From Octopus sinensis (Eukaryota): a stretch of 52,271 nt of DNA. The stretch lies in the NCBI RefSeq assembly GCF_006345805.1, contig NW_021833941.1, positions 1 through 52,271 of the forward strand. Reading direction: 5' to 3'. A program made the position numbers and the translations under genes. A model generated the notes under the pieces. That model saw nothing but the letters and a program-made list of their open reading frames with translations, was not told the origin of the DNA and did no database searches. Every line of letters begins with the position of its first letter. The first letter of the stretch is position 1. Shown in pieces: positions 1-52,271 of this stretch.

Positions 1-182
1 GAAGCACATCACCCCGATTCAATTCCTCACAAAAACTGCTCCCCGCCCGTCCCGCACTTGCGTTGGGTCCAGAGTCCAACATCGGGAAAAGCTGAGAAAG
101 ATTTTGAGGATTGTTGGAATCACCTAATTAATTACCCTAATTAACTGTTGGTGATTCTTGGGTTAAATAAATAAAATAAAAA
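1..182 (+). mobile_element. 3' end of an I-group-like LINE (second copy of the 39773-41517 element)
   Basis: Matches 41336-41517. Ends GGGTTAAATAAATAAAATAAAA and is followed by the same 13-bp TSD AATTTATAGTTGA (183-195). Confidence 0.85.
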
Positions 183-271
183 AATTTATAGTTGAGACTG
201 AAGGGATAACTAGCCATGGGAATTCCCCTTTGATATCGACTAAAAAAACAATCCTTTACAAAAAATAAGTC

Positions 272-3200
272 TCAATCAAAATAAGACGACAATGATTCCA
301 ACAATGATTTGTCCTTCAACGAAATGGAATTCAACACTGCCCTCACAATCTGAATGCGAAAATTCGACCGCTCTAATCGATCTCCAATGACGCGTGCCGT
401 CCTTATGATCTAATAAATATAAACTAACAAAAAGAAACATTTTCTGGAAGTCCTGCCAATCGTGCAACGTTAAGTCCATAACTAGGCGAAGAACCATTTA
501 CAAAACTATAAAGAAAAGTAACGATTTCCCGATCGTCCACATGACAAGCCTAATATTCGTCAAATATCATCAAACCATGAAACCCCTAGGAAAAGTGGGA
601 AAATCTGCCAATAAACAATGGTAATGAGTAGCGAATAAGCATCTACATCCAACACGGCCCAAATGGGATGTTACCGCCTTAGCTATGGCTGTTCCATCGT
701 AAGTGGCGGTGCCCCTCCCTACATCTAGAGAACTGACAGGACAAGCCTAGTTCATCCAACAGGACAAATGAATTGTTAGTTGCGTATTTGAGGATGGACG
801 AGGTTTCAATTAATTCTACGAAAAAAGTGCTTTGTCCCTCGTTAATCCGGTCTGAAGCTCCCAAACGAGTAAAAATACGGTCAACGGGAGACATAGTACA
901 TTCTCTGGCGGGAACAAAACTCCCCTACAAAATATTACATTCTTTGAAGTACCAAATGAGTCATAAGAACTAAAAGACCAGCCATTCTCATTAAAGTGGA
1001 CTTTCCACCCATATTTGCCCCAGTGATGAACATAAGCTGATTAGTTCCTTCAATAGAAAGGTCATTTGGAATAAAATCAGACTTTCTACTTAGAATTGGG
1101 TGAAGTCCTCTCGATATTCTCAAATAAGGAGACTGGCTCTTCACAGTTTATAAAACCAAGACAAACTGGATTTATGGTGGGGCGAGTCATTTCGGCGGAC
1201 TGGAGACTGTAATACGTGAGAGAACACAGAACATCAAGAACGGAGACGCACTCCACGACCCCAATCCATTCTCCATAACTAATATCAGCAAACATCCTTA
1301 TACTGTGCATCAAATGACTCTAGAACAGCTCTAAGCATATCTTTAGACACGGCTGCCTTATTTTCTTCACATTGGGTTAATTTAGTTATCAGTGAAATCA
1401 ATTCATGGCTTCTATACCTTCGATAACCCTTCCGTTGTCCCATCAGTTCACCTTCAATTTCCAACCTATGGAAGATTCTTTGAAATAAAAGTTACCATTC
1501 TGGAACTTCCAGCTGATAGCGATTTCGACCCGTCCCTACATAACTCATGTCCTTGGTTCCATATATAAATTTTTGTGCGGTCAAATAGTCCTCTATGGAT
1601 TTGATGGCTTCTTCTTCCAACACACAGGCTTTGTCAAAATCTGGATCCACTCCACTGAGTGGTAGAATTGTCCCAGCCGAGTCTGAGCCGGCCAAATCAT
1701 AGGAGTTCTAAGACGAATACACAATATTCGCTATAAACCATAAAATGATCAAGAAGGTCAGTCACGTCCGGCAGATTGCCTCCATCCTCAATTAAGGTTA
1801 GGGTTGATATAAGTTGTCGAGATCTAGCAGTAGAAAATACAAAAAAGACCGAAATGATGATACAAGTTTTCCAAAACCAAGACAAATATTGAACGCCTTT
1901 CCCATTCCCCGTAGGACGGAAAGGAAATCGGTGATCCTTCGTCGAACCCGCTTTTCTTCGTCAAAAAATATTGCTCGACTGTCGGGATGAGAGGTCGCTC
2001 TATTTTTGCTCCCATATTGGTGAATTCTACACAAATTTTGTGAATTGAGATAATAATAAAAGGATTAAGAAAACCTTGACAACATTCTTTCAAGATCAGG
2101 GAGGGCTGACATTTCCAACCAACTCTCCTGGAGAAGAGAGCGGTTGGCTCTTAAATCCTCAATAGCATCTAATCTATCGTTTATAACGACGGAAGAACAC
2201 GCTGGATTACAAACCCAAGTATACAATAATCGTTTACCTATGTATAAGCATCATAACAAATTTACCAAATTGGGTTTTGCAGTTATTCAGAACATCAAAG
2301 AGACTATTCCCATTCGAACCCGTGATATTTAAATTTTGATGAGTAACAGAATCAATTATCTACAATTACAGATTATTTAGTAAGACCATTCGCTTAGATT
2401 CTGGAAATTGTCGATATGCGACATGCCCTCCAGTAGAGAGTTCATACCACACCACATTCCCCATCGATAAGAGTTCGTCGTCGATCAGACATCTTCGCAG
2501 ATAGAATATAATCCCTCCAAATGCTCTCATTACTAAGTCCCTGTCTTCCCTTGGCATGACACCGTCAAATGTTAGTTGTTGTAATAAATCAGTTGGAAAT
2601 TTTGTTAAATAATCTTTTTCCCGGAGGTCTCTCATTGTACTCTCAGCCGACCAAGAACTCGAGTTGACCGGAAACGTCGATCTAAGTACAGAAGGCAACG
2701 ATTCCAGAAATGATTTGGTGTCCGTTGACAAAGCTTTGACACTCCGAGAGAGTATGTGACCAATGGGGAAATTGGAGTTAATAATTCTGAGATTAGACCG
2801 AAGTTTGTCGTCTTTAAACTGGCACAACTTAATTTAGAATCTTCATAAATTTACATGAAATTTTCCGATAGTGGTGTCTACAAAGACAACACCTATTTCA
2901 GCAGTTCCGTCCTCGTTGGGGTCTTCGGAAAAGGACAGCAAATATTGGGGAGTATGGCCTGCTTGCTCTCTTCTGGTTCCTATGCTTTCAATTTGACAAA
3001 GCTCTCGGCGGACAACTTTCTCTAAATTGGAGTATATTATTGAATCAACCTAAGTTCTGTTTGGCCATTTCAGGAGTTTCCGTCTGTTCTATTCGTCCAA
3101 CACGATATCCTCTCTCTACCAACACTGAGGCATACCGACTAAATGAGGCCTCCGGAAAACCAGCATGAGCATAGTCACCCTAATCACACCATTACATATT

Positions 3201-3814
3201 TTAGTAAATTAATTAAATAAATACTTTCATGTAAGCTATTCCCAATTCCTGAACACATACAATGGCGTCCATGTGAAAGGATTCGTAGAACTTGCCCATT
3301 TTGAAGAGAAGGATGACGTCATAATTCCGAGACTTGATCTCCCACCACTGCCTCATTGCCTGATGAATATAAATAATGCCAATACAGGAGTTTGCTTTTT
3401 GAGAAATTCGCGTGGTACTAACAGACTAGACGAATCATAGTCCGGATCGGTGTTATGTAATCCATTTCGGTCACTAAAAACTAGTTTTAAATAATTTCAC
3501 CAAATATTTTCAGTGGATAAAAATTCAAAATTAAAATGACTGAATTGTCCATTCGTCTCATTCATAAGTGGCGCACAAGTCGTCGATTTTCGTGCTATTT
3601 TTGGTTCATTTTGTGTAAAAGACTCTTCCGTCATAGAAACCGATTCATCTTCACTGCTTATTACCATGCTGGCACGTCTCCGTATAGAAGAACATTTCTC
3701 TATTATGTTAGGACTTTTCAGTGGTGTTGAATTTAGAGGTTTGGAAATTTGGGTTGTTGTCTGTTCCGCGTTTTTACTTTTCTTAAAGAAATTTAATAAT
3801 GAAGGTTGAGGCAT
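272..3814 (-). CDS. MSH6: DNA mismatch repair protein MSH6 (MutS-alpha), ~1000 aa, 17 introns of 25-48 nt
   Basis: N-terminal PIP box QPSLLNFF; mismatch-binding FKMGKFYE; DSRAIFFDE; Walker [15 protein letters not shown]; [11 protein letters not shown]; [13 protein letters not shown]; LFATHYH; [12 protein letters not shown]. Exons join in frame across GT-AG introns and one GC-AG intron. TGA stop at 272-274. Confidence 0.97.
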
Positions 3815-4130
3815 GCACCACAACGACGATACCAAAAATTTGAAAATTCGCGCTTTATCTATCAATTCGAATATCACACATAAATGAACTTTTATTAAAA
3901 AATAAAACTGTCAAACTTTTATAATTGATTTTTCCTTTTGTCCCAAATTATCTACTAAGCCTGCAAACACAATACTTTTCTAATGGCTCTAAAGTGGGAT
4001 TATGTCCTGTAAGCTTTTTTAAAATTCACTTTCTACTCGATATTCATTCTCTACTTCTTTTCTACTTTTCAATATAAATACTCGTTATCTTTCATTCAGA
4101 ATATGTTTTAATACACTATTTGCCTTAAAG

Positions 4131-4739
4131 CAGCGTTTCCCAACCTTTTTGTGCTCGCGGCACTTAAAACTAGGTTTTTTTCTCCCGGCACTTAAAAAAT
4201 CAATATTCATTAGAAATGTTTTTATAATTAATATATTCAAGAAACTTAACGCAAAATTACCAAAAGTAGTTATAATAACTAATGAGACAAATGTGCTTGT
4301 TTATGTGCACACAAAATTTCCAGACGGGGACGAATTTGCGACAAACATACGCGGAGGTCATCTAAAGCTCTTTGAGAAACGTGAAGTGTTTTAACGAATG
4401 TGGCACTTTGAGTCTCCTAGGATTTTAACATGTTCTTGAAATATGATGATTTCTTATCTCTTAAAGAAAAGTGCATAGTGGCTAAATGCCTTTTCATCTT
4501 AGACGGGACCATCCCATCATTTAAAAGAATTTTACTGCATACAATACACCTTGGTAGTGGCAATGCACAATCTCCATTCCATGTAAATCCATAGTTCAAA
4601 TATTTTTCAGAATAAATTCGTATTTTTTTGTTTTTTTTATTCGCCGAAGATTGAGGATGTGAACCACCAAAAATTGCTCATAACTAACTATTTTAATTTT
4701 AAAATTTTCAAGTTTTTTTAATTAATTAAAATATTATTA
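4131..4739 (-). mobile_element. hAT Buster/Charlie internal-deletion derivative, right end deleted in this copy
   Basis: Left TIR CAGCGTTTCCCAAC follows CCTTAAAG. Carries a BED-type piece YLNYGFTW..PRCIVCSKILLNDGMVPSKMKRHL and the C-terminal DDLRVCLSQIRPRLEILCAHKQAHLSH*. Confidence 0.85.
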
Positions 4740-4974
4740 CAAGTGGATCTTGGATTGTTACATTATGAATTGAAACGTGGATCCTTCAATAAAAAATCTG
4801 CCATTAATAAATGAAAATTTGTTTACGAAAAGTCAGGAAAGTTTAAAATTTCCCAATCGTGCTAGTTGTAGATCAGGGGTTCTCAAGTGCGGCCCCGAGA
4901 ATCTTTTTGATAGCCAACTTCCAAACTTTAAAATTAATTTTGAATATAAAATTAATTTTAAATTAATGATAATA

Positions 4975-5576
4975 TGTCGCGAGCGCAGCGCGCGACCGAG
5001 CGTTAGACGCGACTTTGACACCTAACAAGCCTATCATCAACAAATATATTTATAAATTATTTAAAATTTTAACATGATTTAAAATTAAAATTGAAATAAC
5101 TTAAGTTTTCCATTGAATCCCATAAAATAATTTATAAGTAGACCTTAATAGAAAAAGTAAAATCAATGAATACTGAACGCTAATTTGGTTTAGGTTGTGA
5201 GGGGGGTAATAATTTGACAGATCTCATTGCTATTTTTTCGTTTTAATCTCTAAAATTAGGTCTTCTAATCAAAAATGAACTGTGCAGACAGGCTTGCTCC
5301 TTCAGAAGATTCTTGTTTTGACATTTTTATAAATTATGAAGCATTTAGATTTTTCTCATTATTCTAAAATATCAATTATAAATTTTAAAATATTATTTTT
5401 ATTTATGAAATCGGTTTTAAAGCTCATTCTGCTTGGCATCGATTTTAATTTTTGTTATCGAATATATTTAATCCAAATCAGCCTGGGTATTTGTCAATTT
5501 ATAGATTTTTTGATTGATCGGATCTAGAAATTGAGTGGTCGCTCGCTGCGCTCGGTCGCTCGCTGCGCTCGCGACA
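4975..5576. mobile_element. MITE with GC-rich ~28-bp TIRs (TGTCGCGAGCGCAGCG...), TA-flanked; present only in copy A
   Basis: 4973-5002 and 5549-5578 are inverted repeats (29/30). Extra 17-bp direct repeat at 5537-5570. AT-rich non-coding interior. Confidence 0.7.
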
Positions 5577-5699
5577 TAATATTTTATTGACTCTGAGCCA
5601 CCGGTTGTCAACATGAGTATGTCCATACTAACTTCCAATTTGCTGAGTTCTGTAGCAAAATACAGTAGAATATTCATTTAACAAAAATGAAATTTTAGC

Positions 5700-6040
5700 A
5701 TTTGTTAAATTTATTTAACGAAAAAATTATCTAAAGATGACAACAACTTATAATGCCAATGAATTGCCGATAAATTTTCATTTCTGTTTAAATTGAACAT
5801 TTGCAGGAGGAAATTTAACGCTATTTTAAAGAGTTGTGAGTCAATTCTGGAACAACTTGAAAACTCACAACAAGAATGAAATGACTTTCCGGGACAAAAA
5901 AATTTTTTACAATAAAACAAGAAAATATCTTTAGTCAAAATTAACCAAGAAATTCGATTATATTTTTGAACTGAATGAACTTTGTCTAGAAATTTTTGAC
6001 TAGTAAAAATCGTAAATAGCCCTTTTGTAAATGTAAACAT
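5700..6040 (-). mobile_element. hAT (ZMYM/TTF zinc-finger type) transposase N-terminal remnant; copy at ~46525-46865
   Basis: SWLILTKDIFLFYCKKF...HWHY resembles the TTF zinc finger. hAT-like end CAGGGGTTCTCAAG at 4874. Confidence 0.5.
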
Positions 6041-6305
6041 GTTGACATGTCACTCATTTCGCTCATGCCGGCCACACTTTTTTTTCATAGAAAGAGAACA
6101 TGTTACCAAGGAACTAACTAATCCAAACAAAGTCATGTGTTTCTTCTGCTCCATTTTGTCTCCTTATTTTTGTTGTGCGGCCGATTAAGACATCCTGTTC
6201 CGCCGTGATAACACTGATGACGGCGTCACTCGTCAATCCAGGTGCATATTGGACGCATTAAACCTTCAGCCGGGGTGATAGCAGAGGGATTCGAACCAGG
6301 GAATA

Positions 6306-7808
6306 CAGTGCTTGTCAAAAGAAATTAGATTTGTAATAAATCGACTTTTTTTAAATAAATTAGAATTTAATTTTCTTAAATCATTCTTGGCAAAATTAGA
6401 ATTTTTTTTAATTTTTAAAATTATTATTGGCTTTTAGAATTTAATTTTAAAGCAGAATTTAAAATTTGCCGGACAAAAAAAATTGGATTTTTTTATTTTG
6501 ATGAAACAAATTAAAATTGCTTCATAAACTTCCAAACTTCTTTTTTTCATTGACATAACTAAATTTTCTAGGTATTTTTTCGGTATTGACTCCCATATCA
6601 CAACTAATTTTGTCTCCAAATCTTTCAAGTTTTTCGGCGGTTTTTGCAATAATTTTCTCTTCATCATTACCCAAACATGCTCAATTGGATTAAGGTCAGG
6701 TGATTGAGACGGCCAATCAAGAATTTTATATTTTCTATCGCATATAAATTCTTTAACTACTCGAGAATCGTGGCATGGAGCATTATCTTGTTGAAAAATA
6801 AATGAGTTTAACCCCATTTTTAGAGCTGATTGCTGCAGATTATTCGACAAAATGTTTAAATAATAAGCACTGTTCATTTTTCCATTTATAATAACAAGAT
6901 TACCGACGCCTTCATATGAGAAACATCCTCAAACCATTAACTTTCCTCCACCATACTTAACAGTAGGTACAATATTGGACTTTTCATAGGCAGTACCGTT
7001 TTCACGATAAACAATTTTTCTTGTTTTGCTGTTATAGACCTCAAAACATGACTCATCGGAGAAGATGACTTTCTTCCATTCTTCGTCAGATATGGCTAAA
7101 AACTTTTTCGCAATTAACCATCTGGATTCGATGTTTTTTGATGTCAAAAGAGGTTTGTGTTTTGCAACTCGGGCATGTAATCCAAATGAATTTGGTATAC
7201 GACCAATTGTTCTGGGAGATACGTCCACATTAAATTGAGTTTTTGTTATCTCAGAAAGAGACACAGCAGAAATTGAGGGTTCATCCCTCGAGATTAATTG
7301 TATTGTTTTTTTGATCTAAAGAGAGTTTTGGTAAACGTCTAGATCCAATTTTTCGCGTAGTGCTGCCTTCTTTGGAAAATTTTCTTGTCACAAATCCCAC
7401 GGTCGATCTGGAAATTTTCAGTATTTTGGATATCTCTTCAATTGTTTTTCCTGAAGAGTAATATCCAATTATTACTCCTTTTGTAAAATCAGATAAATGA
7501 ATTTTTGAATTACGCTTCATTTATACGAGAACAGATCAAAAACAACAAAAATCCAATTTTTTTGTCCGGCAAATTTTAAATTCTGCTTTAAAATTAAATT
7601 CTAAAAGCCAAAAACAATTTTAAAATTAAAAAAATAATTCTAATTTTACCAAGAATGATGTAAGAAAATTAAATTATAATTTATTTTAAATTTTATTAAG
7701 AAAAGTTAACAAAGCCATCTTAATAAAATAAAACAATTGGCATTCAAAAAAAAATTTATTTAAAAAAAAGTCGATTTATTACAAATCCATTTTTTTTGTC
7801 AGGCACTG
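6306..7808 (-). mobile_element. Tc1 (DD34E) DNA transposon with ~190-bp TIRs, transposase frameshifted
   Basis: TA|CAGTGC...GCACTG|TA. ORFs 7281-7520 (paired-like HTH), 6929-7264 (VIFSDES, KYGGG) and 6434-6877 (FQQDNAPCH...SPDLNPIE, 34 residues between D and E). Confidence 0.95.
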
Positions 7809-7869
7809 TACACCAGGCTCTTCAAGCACTGCGTCATTATTTCAATAAAATCAATGCACGGCATCTCAA

Positions 7870-8492
7870 TGTTCAATTTACAATTCAATAATGATTTGAA
7901 GATTTCTTTTTTCATTCGACCTCTTGCTTTTGACCAAGTGACATTCATAATTCAAAATATTCTTTCTACAGGAGCAGTAGAGCCAAGTGGGCAAAATACA
8001 TATTCGATTATTTTAATAAAATTTGGAATTTGAATAGTCTTTTCATTAAAATATTTACAAGCATGCATCCAATTTAATTCTTTAATTATCCTGGTTAGTT
8101 TTCCATTCCTTATTTTTTGTTGACCAGAACAATTTAACATTCACAAATTCATCAAATAAATCGTTGACATTTATATCTTTGAATCCAATTGCTTTATTAA
8201 TTTTTTCTCCGGAGTGTGGAAAAAATTAAAGGACGGAGAAAATCTTAATGTATTACGAAACGTTGCCCACAATAGAGGGATATAGGATAAACTAATAATT
8301 CTTATTGTTTCCAGTCCGGCACAAGCTTTGTCATGATTTATGACATACTAAAATTTATTTAAAATTAAGTTTTAATGACTACTAGTACAATTTGGAATCA
8401 TTTGCTTTATCCTTGATACAACTCCATAAACATTATAAGAAATTTTGCGGAACCCTAAAATTAATTCGCGGAACTCATGTTGGGAACCCCAG
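7870..8492 (-). mobile_element. hAT transposase C-terminal (dimerisation domain) remnant with one terminus; copy at ~48695-49317
   Basis: PNFIKIIEYVFCPLGSTAPVERIF matches the hATC S.A.VER.FS motif. TIR-like GTTGGGAACCCCAG at ~8479-8492. Confidence 0.7.
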
Positions 8493-8744
8493 CTCTAAAG
8501 ATTATAAAAAAACCAAAAAGTACCAAGCAACAGGATACATGAGCACCTCAAAGTTAGAAAAATAAGTTATCACTGATAACTTATCAGAAATCTAGTTTTT
8601 TTCAAAGGTGAAAAGTTAAAAAAAATCGAGATTTACATTTAAATAAATTACTGGATTAGATTAATGAAATTCAAAACTTTCAAAAGCCATGAAACCAAAG
8701 CACTACATGATGAATCCAATGAATTTTCAAGAGATTAAAAACCG

Positions 8745-9240
8745 CGCTTAACCAGAACCGTGTGGCCTGCTTCCTCTCCGCTCCACATCAAAACGGTAGT
8801 GTCTTACTCATTTCCAACGGTATCCTTGGGACTCTTTTCGAGAACAGCTCTCTCCAAACTGGTGTCGCCATCCGGCTCGGATTAAAACACGCACATTGCA
8901 TGGATATTTCTACGGGAGCACATTAGGCGTGAACGGGCGAATTTTCCTTCTTGCCGACACAGTCCCGGCCGCTTTTCCAGACATAGGGCTGAACGACGCT
9001 TAACGATTTCACGTTTTGAGCAGTCCAGGGCACTTCTTTCCCTTCAATCTTTGAACGAGTCGGTCTATTCTCATTCCACGAAGGAAATTCATTCGCGTGG
9101 GATGCAACATGCACCGTACGTTTTTTGTCCTGAATATGCCTTCTGAATCCTCTGGTGCGCTGCAAAGTGTGATCCGGTTGCATTCGAAACCTTAGACGTC
9201 TAGAAGATCTCACTACGCCGTTGATCATATATTTTGGTAA
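8745..9240 (+). mobile_element. Degenerate 3' part of a CRE-like (RLE) non-LTR retrotransposon; copy at ~49570-50065
   Basis: Frameshifted pieces LGTLFENSSLQTGVAIRLGL, CRHSPGRFSRH, FAWDATCT, VAFETL. The listed 135-aa minus-strand ORF is a shadow. Confidence 0.75.
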
Positions 9241-9791
9241 AAGGATATTTACCCGTAGAAGTGAACTACAAAAATTATCTTGGTTTTGGCAAATAATCTC
9301 GATAGGCATTTTTTGTGAAAAGTCAATCAATTCATTCCTTCACAAATAAAATCGTTTTTATCAAAGGAAAAATCAAAGAAATCAAAATATTTGTCCTATA
9401 TTTGTCAGGTGGATTATATTGACTTTTCTAATAATAGCTTAAACACATAGGTTAGAAAAGATTTGAAGAAATATTCATTATTAAAAATTTGCTCGAGATA
9501 AAAACAATCCAGAAGTTGTTAGGAAAAGTTTACTGATTATTTATAACAAGGATAAGTTCAAAGTGAGATATTTTTTCATTTTCAAAGATTAAAAATTGTA
9601 AAATAACCCCACAATCACGTGGGAATAAATAATCAATAGTCACGAAATATTTCTAAATAAAAAGGCGACACAGGCGATGTCGACGGTCGTCAATATTTCG
9701 TTTCGTTTCCAGTTAAAGTATTATAGCACTACTGACTGAATATATTTGCTAAGTAATATATATTGGTCTTAATCTTACTTTGATCTATAGA

Positions 9792-10978
9792 ATGAACTTT
9801 GATCCGAATGAAGAATTCCAGATTAATCCAAACTTGCAACCACACATATCTCATAGCAAACACAATTCCGACCAGACACAACCAGTGGACACAAATAATT
9901 ACGTATATAAAAATACAACCTAATTTGTTAAGACGGGCCAGGACAAGGCTCGAATTATTGATATTGAAAACAAATTGACTAGAAAAATGTTACAAATTAA
10001 CAATATTCTCAAAAACTATCAATATAAATTCTTTCAAAATAATGTATTACAACTTTTATATTTTACAATATATTTATTCATGATGTTTATACTAAAATAA
10101 TCAATAGCTAGATATTCATTTCTACTGGGAAGACTTTGCCAAAGCATTTTTTAACGATTCAGCTTCTATTAGACTAATTGGCAACTTTCGAAACAAAGAC
10201 AGGACCTTCGGTATTCTTGAATATGCTCAATCTGATAGTGGTACAAAGAAGAAATATTGGACAATTCTTTTCCAAGTTTTTTCAAGATAAAGCTACAGAA
10301 CTTGAATTTATGATCTCCTTTCCTGAACACTCCCAAATTATCAATAATGAATATTTTGGCTTACACAAAAATTCTTATATGCGAACAGAATACCAATCAG
10401 GAACGTCTGATAAACTCCAAATTCACAGTGTTATGGCTTGTGGAAATTTTAATGTTTGTTTTGATTGCGATGATCTCCTATTTCGCAATTGGGTTCTCCA
10501 TTTTACGAAGATCAGTGAATTTCTAAACAAATCATACCAAACATTATTCTATTTACTCGAAAATATTTCTGATAACGGATTTCCGCCATCAGTCATTAGT
10601 TTTCTCGAAGTTTTCTTTATATTTTAATTTAAAGCTTTTGGAGTCCACCCAGCCAGTGAGGTGCATGATACCAAGTTTAAATATGCCTGAAGGAACCAAG
10701 CCTGCTCTAGAACCCTTAAGGACTGTTTCGACAGCGGAAAGAATAAATAAAGTGGAATCTAATGACCAAAGAAAAAGCAATGCTCAGCGAGATGGGGGTA
10801 AGAGAAGAAATAGTCGGAACAACGCAGATAGCACTGATTCGGTAACTCTTAATACACCTATTTTAATGAAAAGAATTTACAAAATACCAAGAAAAGATAC
10901 AAACTAACAACGATGACTACCGAAGAAGGTATACAATCAGAGAGTGAGACGTATGAAGATGATTTATTTCTTTTTTAA
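9792..10978 (+). CDS. Ldb: Divergent LIM-domain-binding protein (Ldb/Chip, LIM_bind family), 4 introns; this copy has a 1-bp frameshift near 10865
   Basis: Spliced product RIIDIENKL...FYWEDFAKAFFNDSA...IGQFFSKFFQDKATELEF...FDCDDLLFRNWVLHF...ENISDNGF parallels LDB1 RIFELNKRL..WWDAFTTEFFEDDA..IPRYFRSIFEGGATELYY..FDDMMRIKTWHF..KNITRCGL. Confidence 0.75.
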
Positions 10979-11174
10979 TTCAAATTTCACATTTTTTATA
11001 AAATTTACTTTTTGGTGTAATCAGTGAGCTCGAATTTTCAATAGGTTTTAATAGGTTCTTTTGTTTTATAAAAAAATTGCGTTATACTTCATAAAAAATA
11101 TTATCCTAATACTCCGAGTAAATTATGTCTCACTGGTGAACTTTCTGAATGTTAATCAATTAATTTAATAAATT

Positions 11175-11952: not shown

Positions 11953-11990
11953 CATTTCCAGTATTTTAGCTCGAAAGCTACGGCCAATAA

Positions 11991-37724: not shown

Positions 37725-37732
37725 ATCCTTTA

Positions 37733-39540: not shown

Positions 39541-39772
39541 ATATTGAAAATTTTCTTGTCAATAATTATTTTTATTAAAATATATTAAAAATATAGTAGA
39601 ATAACTGCACAGCCTGTCAAAAGTTCACCACGACCTTTATGGACACTATTAAATAATTAAAAAAGTTATATGTTTGAATTGAATATTACGTAAAACTAAA
39701 TTAATATAAAAGGACATTGAATTTTCAGTCTTTTTTTTAATTAAAGGTCTTTTTAATATAATTTATAGTTGA

Positions 39773-41517
39773 TTTGTTTTTCCCAACTTCTTTGGGATGC
39801 TTTCAGTTTCTTAGTGATGGTATCATTTAGATTCTTTATTTCTTTTCTTCCTCCGGGAATAGAAATTAGATTCTTTTTAAGAAAGTTTCTTTTTCTAATA
39901 AGAATTTTTGTCTCCTGGTTGAGATTTTCTTCGAAGTGATGGTAAGTGCATTTTGGGATAAATAGTTTTCTACCCAGCAAGATCGCCTCATTTAGGTACA
40001 GCTCCGTCGATTGATTTGAACAGTTTAGTATCAAAGTTTTGCAGCATTGCGTCGGTGAAGTTAGCATATCCCTCCCAGTTTGCGCTCTTGTAATTGAAAA
40101 AGGACATAGCTTTGTTCGTACGGGGAAGGGTTTTTTTGATCATGATGATGATTGGATTGTGATCTGAATTAAGATCGTAGTCTACTGTCCATGAAATGGC
40201 CGAAGATAAGTTAGTTGAGGATAGTTTAATGTCCGGAGATGTTAACCATTCGGTATCCTTATAAGGTGTCCTAGTGTGGGTCTTCGGATTGTTAAGGAAA
40301 GACATGGCAAAGAGTTGTTTCAATAGAGACATCCTCTCGAGTCTGCCCGTTGGGATTTAAGCCAAGTCGGATGCTTTGCGTCCAAGTCTCCGCAAATAAA
40401 AAGGTTCTTTAAATTGGATAGCTTTGAGAAGTTTGGATTGAATCCCTTTGGACAAGACGGAGGGGGTGGAACATATATGTTGGCAATAGTGGTCTTTCCA
40501 AATTTAGTATTCAACGAAAATATTCGGCCTATCGATCGACTCGAACATAAAACTCTGGCTTTCGAATTTCCTCAGCGAAAGGAGAGGGCGTGTATGCCTG
40601 AATGGAATCAAATCAATCTCAAGATTACTTCCAAATGGAGTTTTCCAAGGCTCCCCCTCTCTCCTGCTCTATTCAATTTATACCTATCCGACATTCCTAA
40701 CCCTGAAATGGAAGACTCATTCATTCTCGCCTACGCTGACGACCTACTCATTGGATCACGTGATCAAGACATCTCGAAAGCTTCCAAAAGAACACAAGAT
40801 CTCTTATTACAAATTCGAACTTGGCTATGTCAAAACAGGATGAACATCTCCCCGAAAAATCGTCCACTACCTTAATTACGTCGGACAAGAGACTTGGAAG
40901 CCATACTGTTGATCTTTTTCTGGACAACGAAAAGATCCCATTCACGAAGAACCCTAAAATCCTGGGGGTCACTTTTGACACCCACATGTGTTTTACTGCC
41001 CATTTAGAGAAGGCCATCGGATCCAGTCAGAGAAAGATTGGACTAATCAAATCGATTTTTGGCGGACTAAAGATACCGTTCCCGGCTTTCGGCACTCTCT
41101 ACAAACAATTCATCTTACCAACAATTGGCTATGCCTGCGCCGCATGGAGTACTAATCTCTCATGGTCTAACCGCCTTAAAATCGAGACTACACTATGCCG
41201 AGCCGCGGCTAGCATAACGAAAATTTCCAACTTGAACAACATTATCCCAACTCCGCTTGACCACCTTATTAAGAAAGATGGAAAGGGTTTCTTAGCCATC
41301 CAACAAGACCACCTGCCAAAAGACCTTAACAACCAGAAGCACATCACCCCGATTCAATTCCTCACAAAAACTGCTCCCCGCCCGTCCCGCACTTGCGTTG
41401 GGTCCAGAGTCCAACATCGGGAAAAGCTGAGAAAGATTTTGAGGATTGTTGGAATCACCTAATTAATTACCCTAATTAACTGTTGGTGATTCTTGGGTTA
41501 AATAAATAAAATAAAAA
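39773..41517 (+). mobile_element. I-group-like LINE insertion with an inverted 5' segment (APE on the minus strand, RT and 3' end on plus)
   Basis: 13-bp TSD AATTTATAGTTGA at 39760-39772 and 41518-41530. Minus strand: NIYVPP, ICGDLDAKH, SPDI, LNSDHNPI. Plus strand from ~40535: WLSNFLSER, QGSPLSPALFN, YADD, PKILGVTFD, A-rich tail. Confidence 0.88.
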
Positions 41518-41606
41518 AATTTATAGTTGAGACTGAAGGGATAACTAGCCATGGGAATTCCCCTTTGATATCGACTAAAAAAACAATCCTTTACAAAAAA
41601 TAAGTC

Positions 41607-44600
41607 TCAATCAAAATAAGACGACAATGATTCCAACAATGATTTGTCCTTCAACGAAATGGAATTCAACACTGCCCTCACAATCTGAATGCGAAAATTC
41701 GACCGCTCTAATCGATCTCCAATGACGCGTGCCGTCCTTATGATCTAATAAATATAAACTAACAAAAAGAAACATTTTCTGGAAGTCCTGCCAATCGTGC
41801 AACGTTAAGTCCATAACTAGGCGAAGAACCATTTACAAAACTATAAAGAAAAGTAACGATTTCCCGATCGTCCACATGACAAGCCTAATATTCGTCAAAT
41901 ATCATCAAACCATGAAACCCCTAGGAAAAGTGGGAAAATCTGCCAATAAACAATGGTAATGAGTAGCGAATAAGCATCTACATCCAACACGGCCCAAATG
42001 GGATGTTACCGCCTTAGCTATGGCTGTTCCATCGTAAGTGGCGGTGCCCCTCCCTACATCTAGAGAACTGACAGGACAAGCCTAGTTCATCCAACAGGAC
42101 AAATGAATTGTTAGTTGCGTATTTGAGGATGGACGAGGTTTCAATTAATTCTACGAAAAAAGTGCTTTGTCCCTCGTTAATCCGGTCTGAAGCTCCCAAA
42201 CGAGTAAAAATACGGTCAACGGGAGACATAGTACATTCTCTGGCGGGAACAAAACTCCCCTACAAAATATTACATTCTTTGAAGTACCAAATGAGTCATA
42301 AGAACTAAAAGACCAGCCATTCTCATTAAAGTGGACTTTCCACCCATATTTGCCCCAGTGATGAACATAAGCTGATTAGTTCCTTCAATAGAAAGGTCAT
42401 TTGGAATAAAATCAGACTTTCTACTTAGAATTGGGTGAAGTCCTCTCGATATTCTCAAATAAGGAGACTGGCTCTTCACAGTTTATAAAACCAAGACAAA
42501 CTGGATTTATGGTGGGGCGAGTCATTTCGGCGGACTGGAGACTGTAATACGTGAGAGAACACAGAACATCAAGAACGGAGACGCACTCCACGACCCCAAT
42601 CCATTCTCCATAACTAATATCAGCAAACATCCTTATACTGTGCATCAAATGACTCTAGAACAGCTCTAAGCATATCTTTAGACACGGCTGCCTTATTTTC
42701 TTCACATTGGGTTAATTTAGTTATCAGTGAAATCAATTCATGGCTTCTATACCTTCGATAACCCTTCCGTTGTCCCATCAGTTCACCTTCAATTTCCAAC
42801 CTATGGAAGATTCTTTGAAATAAAAGTTACCATTCTGGAACTTCCAGCTGATAGCGATTTCGACCCGTCCCTACATAACTCATGTCCTTGGTTCCATATA
42901 TAAATTTTTGTGCGGTCAAATAGTCCTCTATGGATTTGATGGCTTCTTCTTCCAACACACAGGCTTTGTCAAAATCTGGATCCACTCCACTGAGTGGTAG
43001 AATTGTCCCAGCCGAGTCTGAGCCGGCCAAATCATAGGAGTTCTAAGACGAATACACAATATTCGCTATAAACCATAAAATGATCAAGAAGGTCAGTCAC
43101 GTCCGGCAGATTGCCTCCATCCTCAATTAAGGTTAGGGTTGATATAAGTTGTCGAGATCTAGCAGTAGAAAATACAAAAAAGACCGAAATGATGATACAA
43201 GTTTTCCAAAACCAAGACAAATATTGAACGCCTTTCCCATTCCCCGTAGGACGGAAAGGAAATCGGTGATCCTTCGTCGAACCCGCTTTTCTTCGTCAAA
43301 AAATATTGCTCGACTGTCGGGATGAGAGGTCGCTCTATTTTTGCTCCCATATTGGTGAATTCTACACAAATTTTGTGAATTGAGATAATAATAAAAGGAT
43401 TAAGAAAACCTTGACAACATTCTTTCAAGATCAGGGAGGGCTGACATTTCCAACCAACTCTCCTGGAGAAGAGAGCGGTTGGCTCTTAAATCCTCAATAG
43501 CATCTAATCTATCGTTTATAACGACGGAAGAACACGCTGGATTACAAACCCAAGTATACAATAATCGTTTACCTATGTATAAGCATCATAACAAATTTAC
43601 CAAATTGGGTTTTGCAGTTATTCAGAACATCAAAGAGACTATTCCCATTCGAACCCGTGATATTTAAATTTTGATGAGTAACAGAATCAATTATCTACAA
43701 TTACAGATTATTTAGTAAGACCATTCGCTTAGATTCTGGAAATTGTCGATATGCGACATGCCCTCCAGTAGAGAGTTCATACCACACCACATTCCCCATC
43801 GATAAGAGTTCGTCGTCGATCAGACATCTTCGCAGATAGAATATAATCCCTCCAAATGCTCTCATTACTAAGTCCCTGTCTTCCCTTGGCATGACACCGT
43901 CAAATGTTAGTTGTTGTAATAAATCAGTTGGAAATTTTGTTAAATAATCTTTTTCCCGGAGGTCTCTCATTGTACTCTCAGCCGACCAAGAACTCGAGTT
44001 GACCGGAAACGTCGATCTAAGTACAGAAGGCAACGATTCCAGAAATGATTTGGTGTCCGTTGACAAAGCTTTGACACTCCGAGAGAGTATGTGACCAATG
44101 GGGAAATTGGAGTTAATAATTCTGAGATTAGACCGAAGTTTGTCGTCTTTAAACTGGCACAACTTAATTTAGAATCTTCATAAATTTACATGAAATTTTC
44201 CGATAGTGGTGTCTACAAAGACAACACCTATTTCAGCAGTTCCGTCCTCGTTGGGGTCTTCGGAAAAGGACAGCAAATATTGGGGAGTATGGCCTGCTTG
44301 CTCTCTTCTGGTTCCTATGCTTTCAATTTGACAAAGCTCTCGGCGGACAACTTTCTCTAAATTGGAGTATATTATTGAATCAACCTAAGTTCTGTTTGGC
44401 CATTTCAGGAGTTTCCGTCTGTTCTATTCGTCCAACACGATATCCTCTCTCTACCAACACTGAGGCATACCGACTAAATGAGGCCTCCGGAAAACCAGCA
44501 TGAGCATAGTCACCCTAATCACACCATTACATATTTTAGTAAATTAATTAAATAAATACTTTCATGTAAGCTATTCCCAATTCCTGAACACATACAATGG

Positions 44601-45149
44601 CGTCCATGTGAAAGGATTCGTAGAACTTGCCCATTTTGAAGAGAAGGATGACGTCATAATTCCGAGACTTGATCTCCCACCACTGCCTCATTGCCTGATG
44701 AATATAAATAATGCCAATACAGGAGTTTGCTTTTTGAGAAATTCGCGTGGTACTAACAGACTAGACGAATCATAGTCCGGATCGGTGTTATGTAATCCAT
44801 TTCGGTCACTAAAAACTAGTTTTAAATAATTTCACCAAATATTTTCAGTGGATAAAAATTCAAAATTAAAATGACTGAATTGTCCATTCGTCTCATTCAT
44901 AAGTGGCGCACAAGTCGTCGATTTTCGTGCTATTTTTGGTTCATTTTGTGTAAAAGACTCTTCCGTCATAGAAACCGATTCATCTTCACTGCTTATTACC
45001 ATGCTGGCACGTCTCCGTATAGAAGAACATTTCTCTATTATGTTAGGACTTTTCAGTGGTGTTGAATTTAGAGGTTTGGAAATTTGGGTTGTTGTCTGTT
45101 CCGCGTTTTTACTTTTCTTAAAGAAATTTAATAATGAAGGTTGAGGCAT
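41607..45149 (-). CDS. MSH6: MSH6, copy B
   Basis: Identical ORF fragments at a constant offset of 41335. Confidence 0.97.
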
Positions 45150-45465
45150 GCACCACAACGACGATACCAAAAATTTGAAAATTCGCGCTTTATCTATCAA
45201 TTCGAATATCACACATAAATGAACTTTTATTAAAAAATAAAACTGTCAAACTTTTATAATTGATTTTTCCTTTTGTCCCAAATTATCTACTAAGCCTGCA
45301 AACACAATACTTTTCTAATGGCTCTAAAGTGGGATTATGTCCTGTAAGCTTTTTTAAAATTCACTTTCTACTCGATATTCATTCTCTACTTCTTTTCTAC
45401 TTTTCAATATAAATACTCGTTATCTTTCATTCAGAATATGTTTTAATACACTATTTGCCTTAAAG

Positions 45466-46183
45466 CAGCGTTTCCCAACCTTTTTGTGCTCGCGGCACTT
45501 AAAACTAGGTTTTTTTCTCCCGGCACTTAAAAAATCAATATTCATTAGAAATGTTTTTATAATTAATATATTCAAGAAACTTAACGCAAAATTACCAAAA
45601 GTAGTTATAATAACTAATGAGACAAATGTGCTTGTTTATGTGCACACAAAATTTCCAGACGGGGACGAATTTGCGACAAACATACGCGGAGGTCATCTAA
45701 AGCTCTTTGAGAAACGTGAAGTGTTTTAACGAATGTGGCACTTTGAGTCTCCTAGGATTTTAACATGTTCTTGAAATATGATGATTTCTTATCTCTTAAA
45801 GAAAAGTGCATAGTGGCTAAATGCCTTTTCATCTTAGACGGGACCATCCCATCATTTAAAAGAATTTTACTGCATACAATACACCTTGGTAGTGGCAATG
45901 CACAATCTCCATTCCATGTAAATCCATAGTTCAAATATTTTTCAGAATAAATTCGTATTTTTTTGTTTTTTTTATTCGCCGAAGATTGAGGATGTGAACC
46001 ACCAAAAAATTGCTCATAACTAACTATTTTAATTTTAAAATTTTTCAAGTTTTTTTAATTGAATTAAAATATTATTATACAACTATAAATAATTTTTAAT
46101 TTTAAATATTAAAGATCTCGCGGCACCTAAAACCAGATCTCGAGGCACCAAAAGTGCCGCGGCACCCCAGTTGGGAATCGCTG
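45466..46183 (-). mobile_element. Complete 718-bp hAT Buster-type non-autonomous element
   Basis: TIRs CAGCGTTTCCCAAC / GTTGGGAATCGCTG. Perfect 8-bp TSD CCTTAAAG (45458-45465, 46184-46191) fits the Buster nnnTAnnn target. Confidence 0.92.
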
Positions 46184-47130
46184 CCTTAAAGTTTAAAAAA
46201 ATTGCCATCCTATTATTTTTTTTAAGCAGATAAAGAACTATAAATTTGGTCTTACCAAAAGCAAAGTGGATCTTGGATTGTTACATTATGAATTGAAACG
46301 TGGATCCTTCAATAAAAAATCTGCCAATTAATAAATGAAAATTTGTTTACGAAAAGTCAGGAAAGTTTAAAATTTCCCAATCGTGCTAGTTGTAGATCAG
46401 GGGTTCTCAAGTGCGGCCCCGAGAATCTTTTTGCAACATGAGTATGTCCATACTAACTTCCAATTTGCTGAGTTCTGTAGCAAAATACAGTAGAATATTC
46501 ATTTAACAAAAATGAAATTTTAGCATTTGTTAAATTTATTTAACGAAAAAATTATCTAAAGATGACAACAACTTATAATGCCAATGAATTGCCGATAAAT
46601 TTTCATTTCTGTTTAAATTGAACATTTGCAGGAGGAAATTTAACGCTATTTTAAAGAGTTGTGAGTCAATTCTGGAACAACTTGAAAACTCACAACAAGA
46701 ATGAAATGACTTTCCGGGACAAAAAAATTTTTTACAATAAAACAAGAAAATATCTTTAGTCAAAATTAACTAAGAAATTCGATTATATTTTTGAACTGAA
46801 TGAACTTTGTCTAGAAATTTTTGACTAGTAAAAATCGTAAATAGCCCTTCTGTAAATGTAAACATGTTGACATGTCACTCATTTCGCTCATGCCGGCCAC
46901 ACTTTTTTTTCATAGAAAGAGAACATGTTACCAAGGAACTAACTAATCCAAACAAAGTCATGTGTTTCTTCTGCTCCATTTTGTCTCCCCATTTTTGTTG
47001 TGCGGCCGATTAAGACATCCTGTTCCGCCGTGATAACACTGATGACGGCGTCACTCGTCAATCCAGGTGCATATTGGACGCATTAAACCTTCAGCCGGGG
47101 TGATAGCAGAGGGATTCGAACCAGGGAATA

Positions 47131-48633
47131 CAGTGCTTGACAAAAGAAATTAGATTTGTAATAAATCGACTTTTTTTAAATAAATTATAATTTAATTTTC
47201 TTAAATCATTCTTGGCAAAATTAGAATTTTTTTTAATTTTTAAAATTATTATTGGCTTTTAGAATTTAATTTTAAAGCAGAATTTAAAATTTGCCGGACA
47301 AAAAAAATTGGATTTTTTTATTTTGATGAAACAAATTAAAATTGCTTCATAAACTTCCAAACTTCTTTTTTTCATTGACATAACTAAATTTTCTAGGTAT
47401 TTTTTCGGTATTGACTCCCATATCACAACTAATTTTGTCTCCAAATCTTTCAAGTTTTTCGGCGGTTTTTGCAATAATTTTCTCTTCATCATTACCCAAA
47501 CATGCTCAATTGGATTAAGGTCAGGTGATTGAGACGGCCAATCAAGAATTTTATATTTTCTATCGCATATAAATTCTTTAACTACTCGAGAATCGTGGCA
47601 TGGAGCATTATCTTGTTGAAAAATAAATGAGTTTAACCCCATTTTTAGAGCTGATTGCTGCAGATTATTCGACAAAATGTTTAAATAATAAGCACTGTTC
47701 ATTTTTCCATTTATAATAACAAGATTACCGACGCCTTCATATGAGAAACATCCTCAAACCATTAACTTTCCTCCACCATACTTAACAGTAGGTACAATAT
47801 TGGACTTTTCATAGGCAGTACCGTTTTCACGATAAACAATTTTTCTTGTTTTGCTGTTATAGACCTCAAAACATGACTCATCGGAGAAGATGACTTTCTT
47901 CCATTCTTCGTCAGATATGGCTAAAAACTTTTTCGCAATTAACCATCTGGATTCGATGTTTTTTGATGTCAAAAGAGGTTTGTGTTTTGCAACTCGGGCA
48001 TGTAATCCAAATGAATTTGGTATACGACCAATTGTTCTGGGAGATACGTCCACATTAAATTGAGTTTTTGTTATCTCAGAAAGAGACACAGCAGAAATTG
48101 AGGGTTCATCCCTCGAGATTAATTGTATTGTTTTTTTGATCTAAAGAGAGTTTTGGTAAACGTCTAGATCCAATTTTTCGCGTAGTGCTGCCTTCTTTGG
48201 AAAATTTTCTTGTCACAAATCCCACGGTCGATCTGGAAATTTTCAGTATTTTGGATATCTCTTCAATTGTTTTTCCTGAAGAGTAATATCCAATTATTAC
48301 TCCTTTTGTAAAATCAGATAAATGAATTTTTGAATTACGCTTCATTTATACGAGAACAGATCAAAAACAACAAAAATCCAATTTTTTTGTCCGGCAAATT
48401 TTAAATTCTGCTTTAAAATTAAATTCTAAAAGCCAAAAACAATTTTAAAATTAAAAAAATAATTCTAATTTTACCAAGAATGATGTAAGAAAATTAAATT
48501 ATAATTTATTTTAAATTTTATTAAGAAAAGTTAACAAAGCCATCTTAATAAAATAAAACAATTGGCATTCAAAAAAAAATTTATTTAAAAAAAAGTCGAT
48601 TTATTACAAATCCATTTTTTTTGTCAGGCACTG
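47131..48633 (-). mobile_element. Tc1 element, copy B
   Basis: Same ORFs and frameshifts at offset 40825. Confidence 0.95.
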
Positions 48634-50616
48634 TACACCAGGCTCTTCAAGCACTGCGTCATTATTTCAATAAAATCAATGCACGGCATCTCAATGTTCA
48701 ATTTACAATTCAATAATGATTTGAAGATTTCTTTTTTCATTCGACCTCTTGCTTTTGACCAAGTGACATTCATAATTCAAAATATTCTTTCTACAGGAGC
48801 AGTAGAGCCAAGTGGGCAAAATACATATTCGATTATTTTAATAAAATTTGGAATTTGAATAGTCTTTTCATTAAAATATTTACAAGCATGCATCCAATTT
48901 AATTCTTTAATTATCCTGGTTAGTTTTCCATTCCTTATTTTTTGTTGACCAGAACAATTTAACATTCACAAATTCATCAAATAAATCGTTGACATTTATA
49001 TCTTTGAATCCAATTGCTTTATTAATTTTTTCTCCGGAGTGTGGAAAAAATTAAAGGACGGAGAAAATCTTAATGTATTACGAAACGTTGCCCACAATAG
49101 AGGGATATAGGATAAACTAATAATTCTTATTGTTTCCAGTCCGGCACAAGCTTTGTCATGATTTATGACATACTAAAATTTATTTAAAATTAAGTTTTAA
49201 TGACTACTAGTACAATTTGGAATCATTTGCTTTATCCTTGATACAACTCCATAAACATTATAAGAAATTTTGCGGAACCCTAAAATTAATTCGCGGAACT
49301 CATGTTGGGAACCCCAGCTCTAAAGATTATAAAAAAACCAAAAAGTACCAAGCAACAGGATACATGAGCACCTCAAAGTTAGAAAAATAAGTTATCACTG
49401 ATAACTTATCAGAAATCTAGTTTTTTTCAAAGGTGAAAAGTTAAAAAAAATCGAGATTTACATTTAAATAAATTACTGGATTAGATTAATGAAATTCAAA
49501 ACTTTCAAAAGCCATGAAACCAAAGCACTACATGATGAATCCAATGAATTTTCAAGAGATTAAAAACCGCGCTTAACCAGAACCGTGTGGCCTGCTTCCT
49601 CTCCGCTCCACATCAAAACGGTAGTGTCTTACTCATTTCCAACGGTATCCTTGGGACTCTTTTCGAGAACAGCTCTCTCCAAACTGGTGTCGCCATCCGG
49701 CTCGGATTAAAACACGCACATTGCATGGATATTTCTACGGGAGCACATTAGGCGTGAACGGGCGAATTTTCCTTCTTGCCGACACAGTCCCGGCCGCTTT
49801 TCCAGACATAGGGCTGAACGACGCTTAACGATTTCACGTTTTGAGCAGTCCAGGGCACTTCTTTCCCTTCAATCTTTGAACGAGTCGGTCTATTCTCATT
49901 CCACGAAGGAAATTCATTCGCGTGGGATGCAACATGCACCGTACGTTTTTTGTCCTGAATATGCCTTCTGAATCCTCTGGTGCGCTGCAAAGTGTGATCC
50001 GGTTGCATTCGAAACCTTAGACGTCTAGAAGATCTCACTACGCCGTTGATCATATATTTTGGTAAAAGGATATTTACCCGTAGAAGTGAACTACAAAAAT
50101 TATCTTGGTTTTGGCAAATAATCTCGATAGGCATTTTTTGTGAAAAGTCAATCAATTCATTCCTTCACAAATAAAATCGTTTTTATCAAAGGAAAAATCA
50201 AAGAAATCAAAATATTTGTCCTATATTTGTCAGGTGGATTATATTGACTTTTCTAATAATAGCTTAAACACATAGGTTAGAAAAGATTTGAAGAAATATT
50301 CATTATTAAAAATTTGCTCGAGATAAAAACAATCCAGAAGTTGTTAGGAAAAGTTTACTGATTATTTATAACAAGGATAAGTTCAAAGTGAGATATTTTT
50401 TCATTTTCAAAGATTAAAAATTGTAAAATAACCCCACAATCACGTGGGAATAAATAATCAATAGTCACGAAATATTTCTAAATAAAAAGGCGACACAGGC
50501 GATGTCGACGGTCGTCAATATTTCGTTTCGTTTCCAGTTAAAGTATTATAGCACTACTGACTGAATATATTTGCTAAGTAATATATATTGGTCTTAATCT
50601 TACTTTGATCTATAGA

Positions 50617-51804
50617 ATGAACTTTGATCCGAATGAAGAATTCCAGATTAATCCAAACTTGCAACCACACATATCTCATAGCAAACACAATTCCGACCAG
50701 ACACAACCAGTGGACACAAATAATTACGTATATAAAAATACAACCTAATTTGTTAAGACGGGCCAGGACAAGGCTCGAATTATTGATATTGAAAACAAAT
50801 TGACTAGAAAAATGTTACAAATTAACAATATTCTCAAAAACTATCAATATAAATTCTTTCAAAATAATGTATTACAACTTTTATATTTTACAATATATTT
50901 ATTCATGATGTTTATACTAAAATAATCAATAGCTAGATATTCATTTCTACTGGGAAGACTTTGCCAAAGCATTTTTTAACGATTCAGCTTCTATTAGACT
51001 AATTGGCAACTTTCGAAACAAAGACAGGACCTTCGGTATTCTTGAATATGCTCAATCTGATAGTGGTACAAAGAAGAAATATTGGACAATTCTTTTCCAA
51101 GTTTTTTCAAGATAAAGCTACAGAACTTGAATTTATGATCTCCTTTCCTGAACACTCCCAAATTATCAATAATGAATATTTTGGCTTACACAAAAATTCT
51201 TATATGCGAACAGAATACCAATCAGGAACGTCTGATAAACTCCAAATTCACAGTGTTATGGCTTGTGGAAATTTTAATGTTTGTTTTGATTGCGATGATC
51301 TCCTATTTCGCAATTGGGTTCTCCATTTTACGAAGATCAGTGAATTTCTAAACAAATCATACCAAACATTATTCTATTTACTCGAAAATATTTCTGATAA
51401 CGGATTTCCGCCATCAGTCATTAGTTTTCTCGAAGTTTTCTTTATATTTTAATTTAAAGCTTTTGGAGTCCACCCAGCCAGTGAGGTGCATGATACCAAG
51501 TTTAAATATGCCTGAAGGAACCAAGCCTGCTCTAGAACCCTTAAGGACTGTTTCGACAGCGGAAAGAATAAATAAAGTGGAATCTAATGACCAAAGAAAA
51601 AGCAATGCTCAGCGAGATGGGGGTAAGAGAAGAAATAGTCGGAACAACGCAGATAGCACTGATTCGGTAACTCTTAATACACCTATTTTCAATGAAAAGA
51701 ATTTACAAAATACCAAGAAAAGGTACAAACTAACAACGATGACTACCGAAGAAGGTATACAATCAGAGAGTGAGACGTATGAAGATGATTTATTTCTTTT
51801 TTAA
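50617..51804 (+). CDS. Ldb: Ldb/Chip-like gene, copy B, last exon open
   Basis: Same exons. ATTTTCAATG (versus ATTTTAATG in copy A) keeps the frame to ...YEDDLFLF*. Confidence 0.75.
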
Positions 51805-52271
51805 TTCAAATTTCACATTTTTTATAAAATTTACTTTTTGGTGTAATCAGTGAGCTCGAATTTTCAATAGGTTTTAATAGGTTCTTTTGTTTTATAAAAA
51901 AATTGCGTTATACTTCATAAAAAATATTATCCTAATACTCCGAGTAAATTATGTCTTACTGGTGAACTTTCTGAATGTTAATCAATTAATTTAATAAATT
52001 AAAAAGGCTGATTCTTTACTGGGAGAGAGGCTAACGCGAAGAGTTCGAGCGTACTATCGCGAGGGATATCCGCTCAAAAAACTATTTCGATTTGCAGGCG
52101 TCCCCTGTGAGTGTCGACATCCGAGACCCGATCTCCTGGACGAAGCTAATTGTTTTTCCACCCAAGGAACCCGACGTCTCAACTGCGAATGGAAGGAATT
52201 TGTATTTCTCCACAAGTGAAGAATACTTCCGCATCTTTCTGCATTCAGCAGTTGTGACGATTGATCCAGGG

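Follow-up and report, generated by a model that had tools for sequence, protein, structure and literature searches.

A 41.3-kb head-to-tail repeat carrying MSH6 in a contig that best fits a dicyemid

The DNA analysed here is a stretch of 52,271 bp (contig NW_021833941.1, positions 1 to 52,271, of assembly GCF_006345805.1, deposited under Octopus sinensis; called the window hereafter) with 35% GC and zero N bases. It contains a 41.3-kb unit repeated head to tail, of which 1.26 turns are visible. A segment with a complete gene for the mismatch-repair protein MSH6 (A) is followed by a single-copy spacer (B) and then by a second, distinct version of the same segment (A'), and the passage from the spacer into this second version is genuine. 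The arrangement is tentatively read as a recent duplication in chromosomal DNA, in preference to a false join of two alleles during assembly, a gene-bearing DNA circle or a high-copy amplicon.

The repeated segment and its two versions

A BLAST self-comparison and a global alignment placed the direct repeat at positions 1-11445 and 41336-52271, on the same strand and with a period of 41,335 bp, a match far above random expectation. The self-comparison resolved it into three blocks, with 1-4739 matching 41336-46077 (99.94%), 4741-4909 matching 46264-46433 and 5605-11445 matching 46431-52271 (99.78%). Over the 10.7 kb aligned the copies are 99.8-99.9% identical, and they measure 11,445 bp (copy 1) and 10,936 bp (copy 2). 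An earlier sequence-only reading of this DNA had stated that the one stretch equals the other; the coordinates were borne out, but "equals" is too strong for copies that differ in length and in sequence. Elsewhere in the window, no further near-identical repeat longer than 170 bp was found by self-comparison.

Both copies run out of the window, by which the true extent of the repeat is hidden. The second unit is visible to 26% only, and a partial duplication of the form A-B-A' fits equally well. Any window of more than one period taken from a tandem array would look alike. Both ends lie inside retroelements, as the sequence-only reading had seen: position 1 (equivalent to 41336) sits in the C-terminal open reading frame (ORF) of a long interspersed nuclear element (LINE; ORF 40764-41459), and the last base (equivalent to 11445) in a retroelement fragment.

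The global alignment revealed 11 single-nucleotide polymorphisms (SNPs; nine transitions versus two transversions), one extra mismatch beside a 185-bp insertion or deletion (indel), and five one-base indels, some of them in homopolymers. All 17 of these small differences are confined to three clusters, between which the copies are identical over runs of 4,669 and 4,502 bp; in a simulation the two identical runs were given by 0 of 200,000 random placements. Identical sequence totals 9.2 kb, with all of MSH6 included. The SNP divergence is 1.24-1.44% within clusters 2 and 3, zero outside these two and 0.10% overall. A Tc1-like element has two of the cluster 2 SNPs in its left inverted repeat; at both of them copy 2 agrees with the right inverted repeat, and the base of copy 1 is derived.

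Two larger blocks also set the copies apart, one of 699 bp present in copy 1 only and one of 185 bp present in copy 2 only. Within the first, a non-coding element of 614 bp, bounded by terminal inverted repeats, is accompanied by extra flanks of 59 and 26 bp; the block is a transposon-associated structural variant rather than an assembly stutter. The absence of this element and its 59/26-bp flanks from copy 2 looks like an imprecise excision, or like a deletion that took the element along.

Since the differences are clustered and transition-biased and include the 699-bp and 185-bp blocks, they are not random consensus errors. They are biological in origin. Two versions of the segment, be they alleles or paralogues, are hence present in the sample, and one molecule assembled past its own start fails to explain the differences.

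The two links between segment and spacer

The ORF of the LINE in which copy 2 starts continues uninterrupted from 41335 to 41336. A matched target-site duplication of 11-13 nt stands directly outside both ends of the element, and its 3' tail is A-rich. The 11-mer core of the duplication, TTTATAGTTGA, is present only at 185, 39762 and 41520, with a chance expectation of 1.4e-4 in the target zone.

The LINE at 39773-41519 is one insertion event, probably of the 5'-inversion ("twin priming") type. Twin priming is reportedly, after work by Ostertag and Kazazian in 2001, a route to 5'-inverted LINE insertions. As in LINEs of that type, an inverted upstream segment, a sense 3' segment and an A-rich tail stand in this order between the target-site duplications, and the part of a LINE represented in the inverted piece (the endonuclease) lies upstream of that in the sense piece (mid reverse transcriptase onward). 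The insertion differs from most human L1 twin-priming cases in that a larger part is missing between the pieces; both would stem from one and the same element, which sequence comparison did not demonstrate.

As a matched target-site duplication surrounds this single LINE, B already ran directly into the start of A before the insertion. The link from B to A' is a genuine older continuity, the window start is an arbitrary cut, and a mis-join through a dispersed repeat at this link is ruled out. Nor can 41336 be a site of unequal crossing-over between independent copies of a LINE, since the target-site duplications match. A junction newly formed by duplication or circularisation can only be located away from 41336. 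The LINE and MSH6 face each other with their 3' ends, and the stop codon of the gene lies about 75 bp past the right target-site duplication.

At the other link, from A to B, a 5'-truncated retroelement 3' fragment is found, and the last base of the window (equivalent to 11445) is some 25 bp into it from the truncated end. A target-site duplication was not detected around this fragment (11165-11470), the best direct repeat being an 8-mer that is not significant, and no near-identical copy of its roughly 300 bp occurs elsewhere in the window. A false join, if anything of the kind is present in the contig, would sit near 11445.

Genes, probable host and mobile elements

ORFs were scanned against Pfam as ordered ORF concatenations. 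In the gene at 272-3814 the MutS_I, III and V domains were clear and MutS_II was weak, with MutS_IV not separately detected by Pfam. Among solved structures its best match was MSH6 (2e-171), followed by MSH3 (about 1e-54) and MSH2 (about 1e-45), and by these sequence matches the gene is identified as MSH6, not MSH2, MSH3 or MutS. An exon ORF of the gene had neither a homologue nor a self-match in the protein collection, and an exact 41-mer from it had no match in metagenome contigs; these searches thus gave no independent copy of the locus.

The sequence-only reading had described the unit as bearing whole genes. This held for MSH6 and PRP38A, which are whole, and an MSS51_C domain is present in the MSS51-like gene. 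The VWA gene gave a sub-threshold match only, a second VWA match being very weak, and Ldb was left unsupported: the plus-strand ORF region proposed for it (10178-10960) had no Pfam match (E ≤ 0.05) and no solved-structure match (E ≤ 10), and that identity was dropped. No Rfam family and no tRNA were found in the window, by which an array of ribosomal DNA (rDNA) or other RNA genes was rejected. A fosmid or cosmid clone, considered for the size of about 40 kb, was rejected too, as vector-like composition and bacterial genes are both lacking. No replication or maintenance feature was evident in the unit.

The three introns of PRP38A are of GT-AG type and measure 29 nt (28338-28310), 23 nt (28152-28130) and 24 nt (28012-27989). 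The 24-nt intron keeps the frame and has no stop codon, and reads through as an insertion of eight residues relative to human PRP38A. For MSH6 an approximate model was made, in which the frame could be restored from start to stop with GT-AG introns of at most 38 nt alone, many of 26-31 nt; the model served as evidence on intron size only. In a shuffled-sequence control with a stricter limit (at most 32 nt), frame restoration of the MSH6 type was obtained in 0 of 20. A model with the fewest introns, of up to 70 nt, was discarded, as it removed conserved coding blocks.

Among animals, introns below 30 nt are known only in dicyemids and myxobolid myxozoans (PMC13644364). The best matches of PRP38A are all bilaterian, at 60-67% identity and none closer. 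A myxozoan host was rejected on these matches and on the GC content, 35% against 29% in Henneguya salminicola, one cited myxobolid genome. The dicyemid Dicyema japonicum, which the window matches in GC and in repeat content, has 36.7% GC and 48.9% repeats and is rich in LINEs (PMC6736024). Given introns of 23-29 nt, 35% GC, a transposon share of about 50% and no close relative in the protein database, a dicyemid is the best fit for the host; the sequence-only reading had suggested this group as possible from intron sizes.

About half of the unit is transposon-derived, with Tc1-like elements, a pogo-like transposon split by a nested LINE, several LINE fragments and an integrase fragment. Transposon copies in the window are only 30-57% identical to each other at the protein level. 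The Tc1-like element at 35213-36848 has inverted ends of about 180 bp, and in each of them a 41-bp subrepeat recurs about 4.4 times. Among named sequences its transposase is nearest to those of the orthonectid Intoshia linei (62%) and of Octopus sinensis (61%, located within an octopus contig of 429 kb), and no record identical to the intact transposase sequence was found; such similarities hint at a possible exchange of transposons between cephalopod hosts and their parasites. Four fragments represent one retroelement C-terminal domain, which resembles a restriction-like endonuclease and matches no Pfam family. The 21-nt tandem repeat is flanked by a retroelement fragment and a Tc1 fragment, and the two members of a 106-bp inverted pair probably represent 3' ends of oppositely oriented, related LINEs.

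Table 1. Positions of the repeat, its variants, genes and mobile elements in the window.
Feature	Position	Strand	Details
Copy 1 of the repeated segment (A)	1-11445		cut by window start; self-BLAST, global alignment
Single-copy spacer (B)	11446-41335		29.9 kb, gap-free, about half transposon-derived; self-BLAST, N count, Pfam transposon domains
Copy 2 of the repeated segment (A')	41336-52271		cut by window end; self-BLAST, global alignment
Variant cluster 1	4669-4803		four 1-bp indels and one mismatch flanking the 185-bp indel; some outside homopolymers
Variant cluster 2	5946-6363		6 SNPs in 418 bp (1.44%)
Variant cluster 3	10865-11267		5 SNPs and one 1-bp indel in 403 bp (1.24%)
699-bp block, copy 1 only	4910-5608		holds the 614-bp inverted-repeat element and 59 and 26 bp extra flank; alignment
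614-bp non-coding element	4969-5582		34-nt GC-rich terminal inverted repeats (ATAATATGTCGCGAGCGCAGCG...), 94% complementarity
185-bp block, copy 2 only	46078-46262		alignment
LINE insertion with 5' inversion	39773-41519		spans the start of copy 2 at 41336
Left target-site duplication	39760-39772	+	AATTTATAGTTGA
LINE, inverted endonuclease-plus-linker segment	~39773-40500	-	Exo_endo_phos_2 positions 2-51 and 65-117
LINE, sense segment, mid reverse transcriptase to 3' end	~40500-41499	+	RVT_1 positions 123-187
LINE, A-rich tail	41500-41519		boundaries read directly in the sequence
Right target-site duplication	41518-41530	+	13-mer AATTTATAGTTGA; equals 183-195 in copy 1
5'-truncated retroelement 3' fragment	11165-11470	-	~300 bp; 43% identity over 86 residues to the C-terminal domain of ORF 18188-18757
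MSH6, complete, copy 1	272-3814	-	ATG at 3814, TGA at 272-274; N-terminal PIP-box-like motif QPSLLNFF
MSH6, complete, copy 2	41607-45149	-	base for base equal to copy 1
VWA-domain gene (VWA3A-like), weak	12291-16098	+	VWA_3 9.2e-6, 26.2 bits against a cut-off of 27
PRP38A, complete PRP38 domain	27805-28468	-	Pfam PRP38; solved structures 4rza, 5o9z
MSS51-like gene	38547-39558	-	MSS51_C 5.7e-14, mapping to ~38722-39355 (Pfam)
Tc1-like element	6304-7810	-	inverted repeats starting TACAGTG; DDE_3 domain; second copy at 47129-48635
Tc1-like element	35213-36848		intact transposase ORF of 321-324 residues
pogo-like transposon	23689-27506		HTH_Tnp_Tc5 and DDE_1; split by nested LINE
Nested LINE	25014-27163	opposite to pogo-like transposon	reverse-transcriptase ORFs of 264 and 465 residues
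21-nt tandem repeat	37733-37936		9.7 copies, 63-nt higher-order period; ORFs on both strands
Retroelement C-terminal domain, four fragments	11208-11480, 18188-18757, 28549-28925, 37608-37763		motifs RPDG...D...KY...ETxG
106-bp inverted pair	21391-21496 and 31437-31542		88.7% identity, 10 kb apart

Possible origins of the repeat

A real chromosomal head-to-tail duplication, or a collapsed short array, is tentatively favoured at slightly less than an even chance. A segment of at least 11 kb with the whole of MSH6 would then have been recently duplicated in chromosomal DNA and would stand there twice in direct orientation, in the form of a two-copy tandem duplication, of a short array that the assembler could not cross, or minimally of A-B-A'. 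The copies would be about 99.9% identical either through the youth of the event or through gene conversion, and would be told apart by the gain or loss of transposons and by a few unconverted patches. Tandem duplications and collapsed long-period arrays share with this repeat the direct orientation, the fixed period, an identity of about 99.9%, the whole genes and the few distinguishing variants and transposon indels; here, in difference, 1.26 periods are visible, with neither flanks nor a novel junction in view. The chromosomal location, the copy number and the cause of the mosaic differences are inferred. With 29.9 kb of gap-free unique DNA between the copies, the adjacencies A-to-B and B-to-A are both needed, and one of them was verified, which favours a real head-to-tail arrangement. 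There is also little within the unit to mislead a long-read assembler, because it holds no other near-identical repeat above 170 bp and its transposons are 30-57% identical.

Several observations weigh against a real duplication. The link from A to B near 11445 lacks the validation by a target-site duplication that the link from B to A' has, and the window ends 25 bp into a retroelement fragment, just where a graph branch or a false join would sit. No unique flanking sequence that would show chromosomal embedding is visible, and the overlap of about 11 kb is near read length, as in assembly overlaps of the circle type or the boundary type. New mutations in young paralogues would be expected to be evenly spread and were observed in clusters, whose divergence of 1.2-1.4% equals the 1.24% heterozygosity of pooled D. 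japonicum and looks allelic. Sequence alone cannot separate a real duplication from a DNA circle or an assembly error. All the same, the three explanations that the sequence-only reading had called equally open, circle, tandem duplication and haplotype join, are no longer equal, given the copy differences, the spacer, the validated link and the small size of the reported dicyemid circles.

An assembly artefact is unlikely but well within consideration. In this case B and then A would be single-copy and linear, and one allele of A would have been falsely joined ahead of B at or just after 11445, by way of a chimeric read or a repeat-mediated overlap in a heterozygous or pooled sample. The DNA of D. 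japonicum came from pooled animals with 1.24% heterozygosity, and its assembly merged Platanus and Falcon outputs. The divergence within the clusters (1.24-1.44%) matches that heterozygosity, but the overall SNP divergence of 0.10% is about twelve-fold under it. Identical stretches broken by variant patches and by the presence or absence of a transposon form a pattern typical of alleles. The duplicated piece, about one long read in size and touching both contig ends with allelic-looking variants, resembles the false heterotype and homotype duplications of Rhie et al. 2021 (PMC8081667), and the end of the window inside a retroelement fragment with no demonstrable target-site duplication is the exact candidate site for the join. 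Ordinary false duplications, however, are about one read long and set two alleles directly one after the other at a contig boundary, usually over a gap (PMC8081667), whereas 29.9 kb of unique, gap-free and N-free sequence lies between the copies found here, and one link is independently validated by the target-site duplication of the LINE. Because the link into copy 2 is validated, the artefact needs a specific false join near 11445, where the fragment of about 300 bp is too short to mislead long-read overlaps and has no near-identical copy in the window.

That the unit is an extrachromosomal circle of 41.3 kb, bearing MSH6, PRP38A, the MSS51-like gene and the VWA gene, assembled over one full turn and about 11 kb more and with ends derived from two coexisting circle variants, is considered improbable. 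If the window is a whole contig, it forms a closed cycle with an overlap of read length and no exit into flanks, and the continuity over the window start is compatible with a cycle cut at an arbitrary point; a tandem array gives the same assembly signature, though, and if the window was cut from a longer scaffold the circle falls away. The terminal redundancy that had been read, for a whole contig, as the usual signature of a circle is present, but the ends of one circle should be the same apart from read errors, and these differ by the 699-bp and 185-bp structural variants and by 11 clustered SNPs, so that two coexisting circle variants must be assumed. Nor is an RNA gene or any feature for replication or maintenance evident in the unit.

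Reports on dicyemids, the probable host group, describe circular DNA along with the elimination of chromatin and selective amplification (PMC6543705), which speaks for a circle. Circles and DNA elimination had been brought up in the sequence-only reading too, but the published figures do not make a circle of 41 kb bearing nuclear genes probable: dicyemid circles have a median of 702 bp, mitochondrial minicircles measure 344-1605 bp, and the only conserved domains are those of mitochondrially encoded proteins (PMC6543705), against 41,335 bp with MSH6, PRP38A and MSS51_C here. With the circles of Noto et al. 2003 (as cited in PMC6543705) and of Zverkov et al. 2019, the likeness is in the probably shared host group and the terminal redundancy; those circles measure hundreds of bp and at most about 1.6 kb, are either non-coding or limited to single mitochondrial genes, and have circle-specific motifs of 12-20 bp, whereas this unit of 41.3 kb has intron-containing nuclear genes and many transposons. 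In a size of tens of kb or more and in whole, chromosome-derived genes it resembles gene-bearing amplicons of extrachromosomal circular DNA in other eukaryotes. Examples of these are the CUP1 and HXT circles of yeast, the EPSPS replicon of Amaranthus palmeri and the extrachromosomal DNA of tumours. Such amplicons were identified by depth, junction reads and exonuclease resistance, in difference to the sequence used here, and neither a selected gene nor an origin-like feature is apparent in the 41.3-kb unit.

A high-copy chromosomal amplicon, in which a long array of 41-kb units would have been collapsed to one period plus the overlap, has very little probability. It would leave the same self-overlapping signature as a circle, and dicyemid development has been suggested to include selective amplification (PMC6543705). 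Arrays of long period are, however, classically those of rDNA or multigene families, while this unit has no RNA gene and consists of housekeeping genes of the ordinary single-copy kind and transposons, and two sequence versions are visible and no more. A genuine circle or developmentally amplified array in a dicyemid, with intact nuclear housekeeping genes and at least two sequence variants, is taken together a rather faint prospect, and the evidence in the window does not favour it. Were it true, it would be a large gene-bearing product of genome rearrangement, far beyond the known small circles that are non-coding or mitochondrial, and would bear on the role of DNA elimination and circular DNA formation in dicyemids.

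Most likely the finding is an ordinary recent large duplication, or an ambiguity at the level of the assembly, in an unusual host. If it is an artefact, annotation would wrongly count MSH6 as duplicated, and the contig should be trimmed. If the favoured chromosomal duplication is real, the animal has two identical intact copies of MSH6, a core mismatch-repair gene, which would be a modest but concrete recent change of gene dosage in a highly reduced parasite genome.

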